Source of the DNA: Blastocystis sp. Blastoise | Taxonomy: Eukaryota > Protista > Bigyra: Opalinata | NCBI GenBank assembly: GCA_039096225.1 | Contig: JBBPEB010000009.1 | Location: forward strand, 1,612,001-1,676,000 | Direction: 5' to 3' | DNA: 64,000 nt | Shown: in pieces, positions 1,283-53,855 of the stretch | Numbering within the stretch: the stretch's first letter is position 1 | Layout of the letters: each line of letters opens with the position of its first letter | Position numbers and translations under genes: made by a program | The notes under the pieces: model-generated | The model's input: only the letters and a program-made list of their open reading frames with translations | The model's database searches: none | Told to the model about the DNA's origin: nothing

Positions 1283-4204
1283 ATGGATAATCACCAAAAT
1301 TTCCTCACATCAGGTGTTCATCAAGGTGCTAATGATCAAGAAAGAAGTCAAATAACAGATTTTTCTATAGAATATATTCCATTAGATCATGCTAGTATGT
1401 TATATTATTATTTTTGATGTAATAGTTTGAAATGCTAACACTCTTTTTTAGTTGTATTGAATCCAACAGCATTACTTGGATCTACATTGCATCCTACAAA
1501 TGAATTCGCTGTTCTACCAGGGAATCAAAGAACACTTCCATCAGTATTCAGTATTATGCCTCCTGAAATCTCTGTTCATCCACGAGACTATATGGATATA
1601 ACTGGATCATTGCAGATAAGTCATATGGGAATTCCTGAAATGTCTAATTTAAATCAGCCTTCTCTTCCTCAACAATCTTCATTACCTAAAGACATTCAAC
1701 CACGTAAAATGCAAAATCAAGTCATTATTCCCATGGTAAGGATATATATATATATTATATATGTTATGTTATAAAAGATATTTACAAGAGAATTCAAATT
1801 GTTTATAAATATTGTTTAGATTTCTTATCTATATAATATATATAGGAATATTCAAATGACAATTCTTCTATAAAAGAGGATCCATCACGTGCGTCGTTAT
1901 ATAAATTATTCGAAATACAACCTCCAAAACGTGTACGAACTGCTTATAATTTTTTTGCCCAATCATGTTTTGATTCATTAAAAAAAGAAAATAACACACA
2001 TTTTAGTAATACAGAACTTATGAAAATTGTATATATATAGTAGTGTTCTATTTATTATTATATTTTTTATGTTTTTATATTTATATATTTATTAGTTTTT
2101 ATATGTTTCTATTTATATATGATATTCATTGTTAAATTTATAATTCAATTTATAATTCAATTTTTATTTTTTAATTATAATAATTCTTTATACCTTAAGA
2201 ATTTGTATGAATAGTATTCTTTCATTCTTATCTCTTCTTCTATATATATATATATTGTTATTATTTCTGTAGTGTGGTGAGAAATGGAAATGTTTAAAAG
2301 AGGAAGAGAAGCAGATATATATAGAGAAACATAAGGAGGATGAAGAAAGATATAAGAAGGAAGATAAAGTATATAAAGAGAAATTTCAACAAATGGGACT
2401 TACAACTATTCGAGATAAAAAAGGTATATAGATTATTATGTACGTAACTATGTCAATATTGAGTTTTATATATATATATATTATTTTATTGATATATTTA
2501 TATACTGGTATATATATAAATTGTTTATTTTTCTAAATATGTCATCTAGTTGTAAGAATTTTATTATTATTATTATCATTATTATTAATATCATTATTAT
2601 TATGTTAATTATTATTATTATTATTATAAATAGATCAAATGTCCTGTATAATGACGGGAATCAAGAAAAGTGACGTTCGACTCTTTAGCTACGGAATGCT
2701 TTCACTATATGTATATATATACTCATGATTATTATGTTTATTATTATTATGTTTATTATTTTTTTTTTATTATTATGTATATTATTATTTATTACCCTAT
2801 TTATTTAATTGTTTGTTTTCTCTTATAACTATACATATATATATATAACTCTATATATATATATAGGATTATAATATGGAGCATGCTATCGCCTTATTAG
2901 ATTCATCAGTTCAATTTATGCGGTCTATTTATACAAATAACCGTGAAAATAATCCCGATGATATATGTATTTTATTAGTCTTTAATTATTTAGGATCTAT
3001 TGTTTAAATTATATCTTTCACATATCCATATTATTATTATTCAATATATATATATCACTATTATATAAATGATTCCTTCGATACCCTTATTATTCGATTA
3101 TATATATATTTGCTGTAGAATCACCACAATCTCCATCACTTCTTTCTGGAACGTCCGTTATCTCTTCCTCCTATGAACCCTCTACATTGTCTAACGGTGG
3201 AACACAAACAGGAACACAAACAAATACAGAGAAACCATTTGAAAGTAACCAGGAGAATTCGTCATTATCTCCTTTTATCGATATGGATTTATCGAATTCG
3301 AATAGAACTCCAATTCATCAAGAACCTCTAAGTATCCATGACGTGCACATGACAGAGGTAATTCATGATAATACTGTTCCTGTACAAGAACCAATCAAAT
3401 CAAAAACTGATAAACAATATAATGGACCCTCATTACGTTATACATGTTTGTACGAAGGTTGTACGAAATCATTCTCTACGAAGGGTTCGTTACGAATTCA
3501 CATGCGTTCCCATAATAGTATTTCTTATATTCTATTTATATTGTATTAAATCACAGATATATATATAAATTATTATTATTAATAGTTCTATTTTTAATTT
3601 GTTTCTACTGTTTATGCTATATATATAGATGTACAAAAGAAGTATATATGTCAAATACCAGGGTGTAACAAGGAATTTCAGTCGATTTCAGGATTTAATA
3701 AGCACAAACGAAGTCATATACAGAATCAGCAGTATCCTTGTACGGCGATGAACTGTAATAAAGTATTTAAAAGCAAACAGGTATATAGTATTCTTCTAGC
3801 TATGTTATATATTATTATATTATTATATTATTATTATTATTATTATTATTATTATTATATTATTATATATTATTATATTATTATATATTATATTATTATT
3901 CTACTATAGGGTCTTCAATTACATATCCTGAATATTCATCAAAGTAAAAAGCCTTATCCGTGTGAATATCCAAAGTATATATATATATAATTATATATTA
4001 TTATTATTATTATTATTATTATTATTATATTTATCTTCTCTATATAGTTGTAATAAGTCTTTTTCTCGTCGTTGTGATCTTCATTTACACGTGATGCGTA
4101 TCCATACAGGTCAAAAACCGTACAAATGTTTGTACTTAAATTGTAACCGTACGTTTGCCACATTATCTGAGTTACGAAGACATAATGCTCTTCATAAATA
4201 CTGA
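1283..4204 (+). CDS. HMG-box plus five C2H2 zinc-finger putative transcription factor (10 exons)
   Basis: HMG box: PPKRVRTAYNFFAQ...ELMKI|CGEKWKCLKEEEKQIYIEKHKEDEERY. Fingers: YTCLYEGC..HMRSH, YICQIPGC..HKRSH, YPCTAMNC..HILNIH, YPCEYPNC..HVMRIH, TGQKPYKCLYLNC..HNALH. Linking the two halves needs one non-canonical intron (2967-3109). Confidence 0.8.
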
Positions 4205-5351
4205 TTTATTTTATCTCTTCCTATTATATTGAACACATATAATAATGCATGTTACTATTATTATCTATTTATTTACTATATTAATTAGTTTTTTCTTTTT
4301 TTTTTACCTTTTTTCTTTTTTATACATGTATTAATTTATATAAAATAAACTTTTATTTCACTATTCGTTATTCATTTTATATTTTTAGTTTTTTTTTATT
4401 TTTTATTTTTTATTATTTATTACTTGTTTTTCTCTTCTCTCTTCCCTATTCTCTAGTTATTGTATATAATCATGCCATCAAGAAGAAGATAATTTATTTA
4501 TAAAAATATCTCGTGTTAGTATTCTTTTTATATGATCAAGAATTTTTTATTCAAATAATAATTGCCTTTTCGTACTCTATCCTTTTAAATTATGATCGTT
4601 ATCCATTCTTGTTGATTTTGTAAATACTTGTTGTAATATAAAAACACCAACCAAACATATTTTGACACTATAATACAGTCATTCTATTCTTCAGTCATAA
4701 AATATATATAATAACATATATACTTTTACAAATTCAGATATTTTAATTTTTCTATCAAAAGAAAAACAAGATTTTGAAGAAATATTTTAAAAAGTACGTT
4801 CAGAAAAGGAATATATTATTCTTATTTCACGTTGAGCACATTCAGTATTTTAACTTCTCTATTTGCTTTGAAAAAGCATCTCCTATCACTTCAAAAATAA
4901 AATAATTAACAAATCATGGCTAGAATTACAATTATATTTTAATATATAGTTGTACAGAGATGTTTATAACTATAAACAACACTGAATTTCAAATATTATT
5001 CATTCATAATTTAGATATACGCAAAACTTTAAAAGATGGAATTTATTCTCATAAACTGGAAACATTTGTCAAAAGAATAAATAATCATGAATATTGTATT
5101 CAAAATACAATCCAGGGGTAAGTTATCGTTTGCATTAATTTTTCAAGTATAAAAAAATTTCAATTAATAAACTACCCCCATGGTCTTTTCGTCCTTTCAA
5201 TAAAAAGTCTTGTTTTCTTATCACATAATTGTTCTTATAATCTGTATGTATTTGCTATATATGTTGTGTTTATCCTTTTATTTCTATTTAATAATGACTT
5301 ATTAATGTGATTCATTATTCTTTATCTATAAATTCCTTCATATAGATAAAA

Positions 5352-51431: not shown

Positions 51432-52332
51432 CGCAAAAGCCGAGAGCTTCCGCGGTTATTCTGTTTATCTAGCGGCTTCGCCTAGATTGACTGTAGCTTC
51501 GTCTTCTTTATCATCTATAAATGAGCCAATCTATGTGAAGATAGAGTCGATACTCATGATACCAAAGGAGTCCCTTTGAAATTTAAAATTCATCATCATA
51601 TTTACTATAAAATAACTATACTATCTAGTAATGTCAAGTGAAACACAAATATTTTTTTATTATTAAATAGGTTGATAGTTTTACCATCTTGAGGAAAACG
51701 AAATAGTATAATCTTCAGGAATCATATGTAAACAAGTTTATCGAGAAAATCACATTTATTATATATTATTTTGAATTGATTGTCTTTCTTTTATAATATA
51801 AATGCTATAAGATCAAATCTATGTTTTAATTTAAATGAGAATTAATAAAAATGAAGGAAAGTCAATTTGATTACAGAATACTAAAAAACCCTGATAATAT
51901 ATATATTAATAGGCTATTTGATATAATATGTGACCTTCAACGTTTTCATATTGTTTCTATGATGATTATAAAGAAATTAGATTGACATAATCAAATCATT
52001 CATATTTATTGGTCTAGAATAGTTTGGTTAACCTATAGGAACTTGCGTGTATTTATGATATCTAAAAGAATGGATAAAAATATGTATATAATTCATGTTG
52101 TTATTTCATATAAATAGTTTTGAGTTAAAAGAATATAATAATCGGAACATAATGGAGTTATTATTGAATTATCATGTTTAGTTTTTTTTTATTTTACTTG
52201 TCAAATAGTGATAAGATGTTGATACTATACACGTTCATTTTAGACAGTAGCTTTTAGAATAAAAATAAATAATAATAAAACAAATAAACACAGAAAGAAA
52301 TATATATTAATGGAAACAATAAAAAAATTTGA

Positions 52333-53855
52333 CTACTGTGTTTTTGTGATTTTATATATATCTCTAAGAACGTTATTATGTGCATTATTTGAATCAATAA
52401 TCTCAACATTTAGAGGTAAATTCTATAGGATATATTTATAGAAGTATAGATAATAAATGAAATAAACGATATGATGTAAGAATTAAATATATATAATATA
52501 TATATATATGAATAAAATAATATTGAGAGATAATATACATGTTGTTGAATATAGTTAAGAAGACACATATATCCCCCGCCAACACCAAAATAATAACGTT
52601 GACTGGCACAATAGCACGTGACATTCATTGAGGATAAAAGGGGGACTAAGAGGTTTATGAAAAAGGAGACAGTTTCAGGTGAATATAGAGTGTATATAGA
52701 TGAAGGAATAGTGGTAAGAAGAGGAAAGAGAAGAAATATATATAATGATATATAAGAATAAAATAGAAAGAAGAATAAAAAGATATATCTGAGGCCAAAA
52801 TATAATCGAATGCAATATGTTCAACAAGTGGGAACACAGTTCCCCATTCTCCTTTTATTAACTTACAACTATAAGAATAGGTTTAATAAAGTGATATACA
52901 TAATAATGTTAGTATGTTTAATAATAATATTATGGTTAATAATGATAGTATGGTTAATAATAATAATAATAATAGTAATAATAATAATAATAATAATAAT
53001 AATAATAATAATAATATACTTTGAATATTGATCATGATTACAGTTGACAGCAATAGCAGGTGAAGTAGCATTCAATAAAGTATCTTCATTCAAATCCTAT
53101 AATATATATTTAATAACAACTATAATAACGGTTATATATTGATGATAATTATGAATACAATTATTATTATTATATATATAAACAAATAATAAATATAACA
53201 CATTATTACATATACTATAATTATATTATATTATATATATATATACTTGAAAGATGACTTTAGCTCCATGTTGAAGCGCATATATACCCGGTAATCCATG
53301 GCCACATCCTAATTCAATCACATTCTTATTGCTGAATGGAATTTCAGACTTATTCAGATAATTCACAAGATCAATAGCACCATGCCAAACTGTATGACCA
53401 CCTTTATTATTGTATTATTAATATATATATATATATATATATATATATATATATTTGAGAATAAAAGCAAAAACAAAAACAAAAAATAGAATGTAATATT
53501 ACTCTCTTATAAGATATCAAGAAATATAGTGTACAACATACCTTCATACTTTCCTGGAATAATATCTGTGTTTTTAACACTAATTCCTTCATAGTTCACG
53601 TATTTTAATCCACAAATATTCAAAGGTGTTGTTATAGAAGTACTTAAAGCATCAAAATTTGGATTTTGAAGATAAGTAGCCTTCTCAATGTTTTTAAATT
53701 CTTTTTTTCGAGATTCATCACTTGATAATTGATCTTGAACTTCTATTTGAGGTTTCTCTGTGTTCTATATAGAAATTAATTGACTAAAAGTATTAATATT
53801 ATACTGCAAAGAAATTAAATTTGAAGGTAGCATGATTAGAATTAGAGAAATCCAT
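52333..53855 (-). CDS. METTL18: Histidine protein methyltransferase (METTL18/Hpm1-like); 7 exons, one AT-AC intron
   Basis: FKFNF N-terminal motif, DIIPGKYEGGHTVW, VIELGCGHGLPG, FQDLN, FDYILASD-TLYS and YYFGVGGG. Confidence 0.9.

Follow-up and report, generated by a model that had tools for sequence, protein, structure and literature searches.

Introns with ends other than GT-AG have been described in human Blastocystis, where GC-AG accounts for 0.5%, GA-AG for 0.16% and the U12-type AT-AC class for around 1% (PMC5608401, PMC10639083). A tolerance of non-canonical ends is also known from appendicularians, in which it has been attributed to protein factors, in the form of divergent U2AF paralogs, and to modification of small nuclear RNAs (snRNAs) (PMC13326754). 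The genome paper on the tortoise isolates of Blastocystis makes no mention of splice-site classes (PMC12129017). Here we describe a window of 64,000 nucleotides (nt) from Blastocystis sp. Blastoise (GenBank assembly GCA_039096225.1, contig JBBPEB010000009.1, positions 1,612,001 to 1,676,000; G000:C3:1612001-1676000 in our numbering), in which four introns carry the ends GT-AA (RPL3), CT-AG and AT-AA (both in the gene for succinyl-CoA synthetase beta, SCS-beta) and AT-AG (an HCF101-type gene). Judging from the genomic sequence, these are likely to be U2-type introns in which one or both terminal Gs have been replaced and which would still be removed at their ancestral junctions, in a lineage that would tolerate non-G termini.

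The assembly comprises 33.34 Mb in 34 contigs, of which C2, C4, C8 and C26 are also cited below, and was built from long reads, short reads and Hi-C (PMC12129017). The genome has a GC content of 23%, a sign of extreme AT pressure, and the window itself (GC 21-27%) is gene-dense and very intron-rich. Introns were parsed with our own splice-aware Viterbi gene finder, which combines codon and dicodon scores with donor and acceptor matrices. In genes scoring at least 25 this gave approximately 147 introns, 137 of them GT-AG, in line with the roughly 140 introns that an earlier inspection of the letters alone (the sequence-only reading) had traced by hand; RPB1 has 17 introns, every one GT-AG. The intron consensus of the window opens with GTATATAT and closes with (AT)nATAG, and the overall consensus can be written as G(TA)n...(TA)nG, with GTATAT as the majority donor. 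GTAAGT is a rare donor here, yet it is the donor motif of two odd introns, those of RPL3 and SCS-beta intron 1. When only GT-AG introns are allowed, the parse breaks three genes, with HCF101 and SCS-beta falling into fragments and RPL3 losing its true start, and all three are restored when odd ends are permitted at a cost. Given a usual rate of 0.1%, the probability of finding four major-type introns without GT/GC-AG ends among about 145 is 1.6e-5. The sequence-only reading had held that six to seven introns need non-canonical ends; this stands for six of the seven, the exception being a GT-AT intron in a zinc-finger gene that has a canonical alternative.

The odd junction of RPL3 can be fixed to the base. 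Exon 1 of this gene (20208..20229, plus strand) is 22 nt long, codes for MSHRKFE, ends on the first base of codon 8, and directly abuts a perfect GTAAGT. The phase-1 intron that follows (20230..20307; GTAAGT...TATAA, GT-AA) gives way to exon 2 (20308..21449), which runs through the stop codon and is in frame only when it starts 2 nt before CCC CGT. Sliding the junction yields the equivalent pairs AG-TA and AA-AT, none of them canonical. A second RPL3 copy on contig C2 (G000:C2:230312-231451, L008) shows 1 difference in 1143 nt of exon 2, with the encoded residues 100% identical, and keeps the 22-nt exon and GTAAGT with one synonymous T/C difference, its intron ending in TATAA|AG. Both copies thus need the odd junction, and no clean copy of RPL3 exists. 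In a contig of human-type Blastocystis, the same 22-nt exon 1 is followed by a phase-1 GTACGT...CTCTAG intron that also ends 2 nt before CCC CGT, and the spacing SHRK-xxx-PR[HK]G is kept in all 79 of the 79 RPL3 homologues with a readable N-terminus. The canonical alternative for this intron (CAT C|GTAAGT ... ATAAAG|CCC, leading to MSH-PRHG) was rejected in view of this spacing, the conservation of the C2 copy and the human-type ortholog. The introns and 200-nt flanks of the two copies have diverged to near-random similarity, and the near-identity of exon 2 beside them has the appearance of gene conversion (concerted evolution) confined to the exon, possibly via complementary DNA (cDNA).

SCS-beta, of the ADP-forming type (25504..27544, minus strand; 6 exons, 431 amino acids), contains two odd introns. 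Intron 1 (26993..27230, phase 2; CTAAGT...ATATAG, CT-AG) has counterparts of identical position and phase in a paralog on contig C2 (G000:C2:157411-160608, L002; 431 codons), where the ends are GTAAGT...ATATAG, and in human-type Blastocystis, where they are GTACAG...GGTTAG. Sliding makes TA-GC equivalent to CT-AG and gives no canonical pair, while in-frame GT-AG pairings within 30 nt involve only weak sites and delete conserved junction residues. Intron 5 (25774..25876, phase 0; ATATATAT...ACATAA, AT-AA) contains not a single GT or AG, and none of its five slide positions is canonical. The C2 paralog is devoid of introns 4 and 5 of the window copy and continuous through NKNQIISAI; since it reads straight across, it locates the AT-AA junction with the precision of a cDNA, and the human-type ortholog is likewise continuous at this position. 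The paralog has an odd intron of its own, GT...AT, between WRQ and FPQCKFVVKAQ. The window copy is uninterrupted there, and in human-type Blastocystis a GT-AG intron of matching base and phase occurs at this site. The canonical human-type introns at the CT-AG and GT-AT sites indicate that these two of the three SCS-beta odd introns are decayed ancestral introns.

The two SCS-beta paralogs also differ by the presence or absence of four introns at a synonymous divergence (dS) of 0.35, which implies that introns have been gained or lost quickly and precisely: the window copy alone contains introns 26063-26185 and 25774-25876, and L002:2008-2102 (the GT-AT intron) and L002:514-611 are found in the C2 copy only. 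Direct repeats of 4 nt (AAAT, GTAC) flank the paralog-specific introns 25774-25876 and L002:514-611, and may be either chance occurrences in AT-rich DNA or insertion or duplication marks of intron birth.

The third gene is an HCF101-type Mrp/NBP35 gene (5716..8172, minus strand) with DUF59, P-loop ATPase and DUF971 domains, present in single copy and divided into 10 exons. According to an alignment with seven homologues, its intron 4 (7014..7170, phase 2; ATATATAT...ATATAG, AT-AG) must begin directly after ...TTTGG, and none of the 8 slide positions open to its junction (-1 to +6) gives GT-AG. The sole canonical option, starting with GTGTAT at 7185, was rejected, as it deletes CMSFG, which aligns with a conserved [LIV]-x-S-x-[GS] in the 7 homologues. 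Searches with the first exon returned weak matches only, which served as alignment guides, and a search of the protein collection with the last exon found no orthologues. Intron 7 of the same gene (6480..6604; GCATAT...ATAAAG, GC-AG), aligned with homologues, yields a gap-free junction DTYKG|IRMF. It combines GC with an otherwise strong donor (GCATATAT...ATAAAG), as a U2-type GC-AG intron does; the intron proposed by the sequence-only reading is real, and it belongs to an ordinary known class that needs no special explanation.

For RPL3 GT-AA, for both SCS-beta introns and for HCF101 AT-AG, the need for non-canonical ends claimed from the letters alone was confirmed by these comparisons. As judged from paralogs and homologues, the odd ends truly exist in the genome, in essential genes that are intact, under constraint and in part present as single copies, and exactly the odd junctions are required to produce the conserved proteins. 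It is very improbable that the affected copies are dead or dying, or that the odd bases are assembly errors. Duplication of RPL3 and SCS-beta on contig C2 would leave room for decay of one copy, but no rescue copy was found: both RPL3 copies have GT...AA, both SCS-beta copies carry an odd intron, and HCF101 is single-copy, as is METTL18, described below. Moreover, the SCS-beta copies have neither stops nor frameshifts and evolve at a ratio of nonsynonymous to synonymous divergence (dN/dS) of 0.32. As for assembly errors, the A at the 3' end of the RPL3 intron is found in two loci that were assembled independently, two errors would be needed for the AT-AA intron, and the assembly draws on long as well as short reads, together with Hi-C (PMC12129017).

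A different explanation is that cryptic canonical sites are used, as the published gene models have it, so that RPL3 would read MSH-PRHG, SCS-beta would be shortened by 25 residues and its N-terminus, and HCF101 would lack CMSFG. In-frame GT-AG alternatives are indeed available for RPL3, SCS-beta intron 5, HCF101 intron 4 and the zinc-finger gene, with the junctions MSH|PRHG (RPL3), DVG|VNIFGG (SCS-beta) and HGVK|YMT (HCF101) in the three conserved genes. Each of them, however, deletes residues that are invariant or strongly conserved among homologues; the segments that would be skipped are open, coding-like and conserved between paralogs, as in the synonymous change of RPL3 exon 1; the in-frame GT-AG pairs around the SCS-beta CT-AG intron are, as noted, weak and costly in conserved residues; and the alternative donors GTGTAT and GTGAAA match the consensus poorly. 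The public NCBI models of SCS-beta and of both RPL3 copies are wrong around the odd introns. In particular, the model of the window RPL3 (P0003) starts at an internal methionine, that of the C2 copy (P0121, KAK8795517.1) has MSH followed by intron read-through, and that of the window SCS-beta (P0168, WA158_000863) begins after the CT-AG intron and swaps the AT-AA intron for a larger GT-AG intron, which removes the 25 conserved residues. The models mis-handle these genes because predictors accept only GT/GC-AG introns. To us the three look like mutually inconsistent work-arounds, unlike read-supported junctions, and inconsistent avoidance of the odd introns is what one would predict had reads supported none of the canonical junctions. 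Overall, use of canonical sites appears quite improbable.

The context at positions +3..+8 and -12..-3 of the four odd introns falls between the 6th and 69th percentile of 487 canonical introns and exceeds 80-99% of background positions; UAAGU or UAUAUA follows the first base, and (UA)n precedes the last. The proposal that the local context is kept was upheld, and so, for the most part, was the proposal that, GC-AG aside, only the first and/or last base has changed. None of the four has the GT/GC...AG ends of an ordinary U2-type intron. Canonical orthologues or paralogues occur at the identical base for three odd introns, two in the window (RPL3 GT-AA and SCS-beta CT-AG) and one on C2 (the paralog GT-AT), and none does so for AT-AA.

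The sequence-only reading had further suggested changes in the U1, U5 or U6 snRNAs, or a structure-guided mechanism, and neither suggestion survived inspection. The 5' end of U1 is canonical (AUACUUACCU; two copies, G000:C8:1926241-1926394 and C26:320852-321005), as are the U2 branch-site box GUAGUA, the U6 ACAGAGA box and loop I of U5 (GCCUUUUAC, three copies). Adaptation of the snRNAs was rejected on the grounds that the core motifs of U1, U2, U5, U6, U11, U12 and U6atac look canonical. As a separate observation, U1 keeps its universal AUACUUACCU although most 5' splice sites in this genome mismatch U1 at +4 and +5. Regarding structure, none of the four odd introns folds more favourably than shuffled sequences do (z +1.58, +0.69, -0.19 and +1.04), and the minimum-energy fold leaves their ends unpaired, whereas a canonical (TA)n-flanked intron used as control pairs end to end with z -2.28; structure-guided splicing was rejected on both counts.

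The same data bear on the idea that the terminal bases are restored by RNA editing before splicing, or that the segments are removed by non-spliceosomal machinery. A-to-I editing can make an AG-like 3' site in animals. However, it is unable to mend introns that begin with C or end with T or G, and the odd introns are devoid of unusual double-stranded structure and have the context of normal spliceosomal introns. Editing or foreign machinery is accordingly given very little credence.

The phase-0 AT-AC intron of METTL18 (52692..52786, minus strand) reads ATATCTTT...TTCCTTCAT(9 nt)AC, and the exon that follows aligns to human METTL18 (PDB 4RFQ) from T215, TIYNPDYY. The 5' splice site ATATCTTT matches 7 of the 8 positions of [AG]TATCCTT, and the T that replaces C at +6 can still form a G-U pair with U11 AUAAAGGGC. 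The branch box TTCCTTCAT fits TTCCTTAAC, expected approximately 10-15 nt from the 3' end, its A lying 9 nt before AC, a shortish spacing. U11 (62.9 bits) and U6atac (63.8 bits) are present in the genome, together with a U12 that scores 46.8 bits, under the Rfam cut-off of 53, but carries the correct box, GUAAGGAA, complementary to the branch-site box. On these motifs, the METTL18 intron is a normal minor-spliceosome (U12-type) intron, of a kind that earlier work has reported from Blastocystis (PMC5608401, PMC10639083). The sequence-only reading was right that the intron is needed; the case itself, with ATATCTTT, TTCCTTCAT and U11, U12 and U6atac at hand, is an ordinary one. In an amino-acid transporter gene on contig C4 (approximately G000:C4:505043-505113, L023), a G-free stretch with ATATCCTTTT at its start and TTCTTTAAT near its end probably represents a further U12-type intron, one whose 3' end is not AG.

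The minor spliceosome accepts AT-AA and AT-AG ends. The two A-starting introns, SCS-beta AT-AA and HCF101 AT-AG, might then be degenerate U12-type introns, an explanation in keeping with the richness of Blastocystis in AT-AC minor introns (PMC5608401, PMC10639083), with the presence of the minor snRNAs, and with the phase 0 of the SCS-beta intron and the UAUAUAAC found 12 nt ahead of its end. Their 5' ends, however, are both ATATATAT, which matches 5 of the 8 positions of [AG]TATCCTT and lacks, at +5/+6, the CC to which U11 AAAGGG and U6atac pair. No TTCCTT-type box was found either, the SCS-beta intron having only UAUAUAAC and the HCF101 intron nothing similar near its 3' end. Furthermore, CT-AG, GT-AA, GT-AT and GT-GG would be left unexplained. 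A minor-spliceosome origin of the two introns is for these reasons considered unlikely.

The mechanism we favour for the four introns starts from AT pressure, under which the first and/or last G of RPL3 GT-AA, SCS-beta CT-AG, SCS-beta AT-AA and HCF101 AT-AG would have been replaced; at least two of the four appear to descend from canonical GT-AG ancestors. The major spliceosome would then excise the introns at precisely the ancestral junctions. Odd ends in constrained and partly single-copy genes, combined with a normal context, make it the simplest reading of the sequence data that the splicing machinery tolerates termini other than G. Such tolerance would reside in protein factors (U2AF, Prp8, second-step factors) and not in the snRNAs; by analogy with the U2AF paralogs of Fritillaria (PMC13326754), protein factors are probably its seat. 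Of the earlier proposal that the spliceosome tolerates NT...AN termini, what holds is the part visible in the sequence, namely odd ends, context and constraint, while its appeal to snRNA changes and to folding fell away.

Several points weigh against this interpretation. In yeast and mammals, the second splicing step is blocked when +1 is A or C or when -1 is not G, and the canonical snRNAs offer no hint of adaptation to non-G ends. In RPL3, an AG sits just 2 nt downstream of where the 3' junction is placed, and a normal spliceosome would be expected to favour that AG, with a frameshift as the result. The AT-AA intron, which neither the paralog nor the human-type ortholog has, may be a recent gain instead of a decayed ancestral intron, or it may have been lost elsewhere. 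For junctions that can slide, the intron class is named by convention. Finally, no transcript-derived proteins or contigs of the organism were present in the protein collection, nor did two exon-only pattern scans of JGI metagenome contigs return any.

A broader version of the proposal holds that in the clade of tortoise Blastocystis the major spliceosome no longer depends strictly on G at the first and last intron positions, that any NU...AN intron in a UA-rich context would be excised accurately, and that new introns may arise without GT-AG ends. The last element draws on the AT-AA intron, which occurs in only one of two young SCS-beta paralogs and is missing from the human-type ortholog. 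As a whole, this version is possible but on the present sequences rather doubtful.

Other candidates in the window and beyond it are of mixed quality. In the zinc-finger/HMG gene (plus strand), the putative GT-AT intron at 2967..3109 lies in a region that is not conserved. Pairing the GT at 2967 with the AG at 3118 yields TAA at the junction, and GTGAAA at 2943 paired with the same AG is a possible canonical solution within the non-conserved stretch; the intron may end at 3109 as the sequence-only reading had it, or the canonical 2943-3118 may equally apply. A scan of a further 200 kb of the genome with a relaxed finder called 206 of 883 introns odd, which is overcalling and gives no genome-wide rate, and with strict filters it retained 8 non-canonical introns against 152 well-flanked GT-AG ones. 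Three of the 8 were checked by hand: a call in a topoisomerase II gene was dismissed as an artefact, a normal GT-AG intron being present, one was U12-like, and one, in a GH27 alpha-galactosidase gene (G000:C4:518674-518853, L024), looks real. Here the junction TCG|GYPGS is needed across the intron GTATAT...TTATGG, which has no usable AG and would be GT-GG or one of its slide equivalents.

The gene finder also proposed a candidate GA-AG intron (GAATGT...ATGTAG) at 47161-47223 on the minus strand, in a large low-complexity gene, GA-AG being a rare class already described in Blastocystis ST1. An MFS-type transporter gene at 28799-31655 (minus strand) has no clean model with GT-AG introns alone and may hold more odd introns. 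Positions 21765-21844 consist of intron sequence rich in (AAT)n/(TA)n, and similar microsatellite-like introns are common in this genome. Among the remaining features are a tiny RPL41 gene without introns (5354-5431, plus strand) and tRNA genes predicted by ARAGORN for Glu-TTC (33882-33954), Thr-AGT (43388-43460) and Ser-AGA (53968-54049), all on the plus strand.

The practical consequence is immediate, as the public annotation mis-models the essential genes RPL3 and SCS-beta. The low BUSCO values of the tortoise isolates (around 42-43%; PMC12129017) could in part be an artefact of gene prediction restricted to GT/GC-AG introns. RNA sequencing data suited to a test of the junctions already exist; a search of sequencing runs also returned a probable RNA run containing half of the query words and a polyA metatranscriptome. 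Should RNA data confirm the junctions, they would document a second kind of route to non-canonical splicing, in which, under AT pressure and with unchanged snRNAs, terminal Gs are lost in a scattered manner from a few per cent of introns that are normal in other respects, as distinct from the wholesale re-coding of Fritillaria and from the structure-based introns of euglenozoans. This touches on the old question of how much of the G1...G-1 requirement is imposed by the chemistry of the spliceosome and how much by accessory factors. If the broader version of the proposal is true, a culturable protist whose snRNAs are canonical would represent a natural experiment on splice-site fidelity, with U2AF, Prp8, second-step factors and snRNA modification as the parts to consider.

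In U2-type introns the first and last bases interact as G1-G-1, and yeast and mammalian genetics have identified a covarying A...C as the viable alternative. The introns described here resemble that genetic system in varying at these two positions, and differ from it in showing C...G, A...A, A...G, G...A and G...T combinations with no A...C covariation. Compared with human Blastocystis, METTL18 AT-AC and HCF101 GC-AG fit described classes, whereas CT-AG, AT-AA, GT-AA, AT-AG, GT-AT and GT-GG lie outside those described for ST1 or ST7. The SCS-beta CT-AG intron has a parallel in the CT-AG intron of Giardia, which likewise has C for G at +1, a normal AG and a strongly conserved extended 5' motif (PMC10711314); unlike Giardia, with its handful of introns and divergent snRNAs, this genome combines a large intron set with canonical snRNAs. 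Variable termini in conserved genes alongside a conserved spliceosome are also a feature of the nonconventional introns of euglenids and hemistasiid diplonemids, but there extensive pairing joins the intron ends (PMC12621601), and the four odd introns are unpaired at theirs. A likeness also exists to Fritillaria borealis and Oikopleura, in which U2-type introns lacking GT and/or AG coexist with conserved core snRNAs (PMC13326754), splicing being in our case predicted from the genomic sequence. The rule is broken by 95% of Fritillaria introns, among which new dinucleotide preferences have arisen, whereas here only a few per cent are affected and no replacement is preferred, so that the pattern looks like a scattered single-base decay of GT-AG introns.

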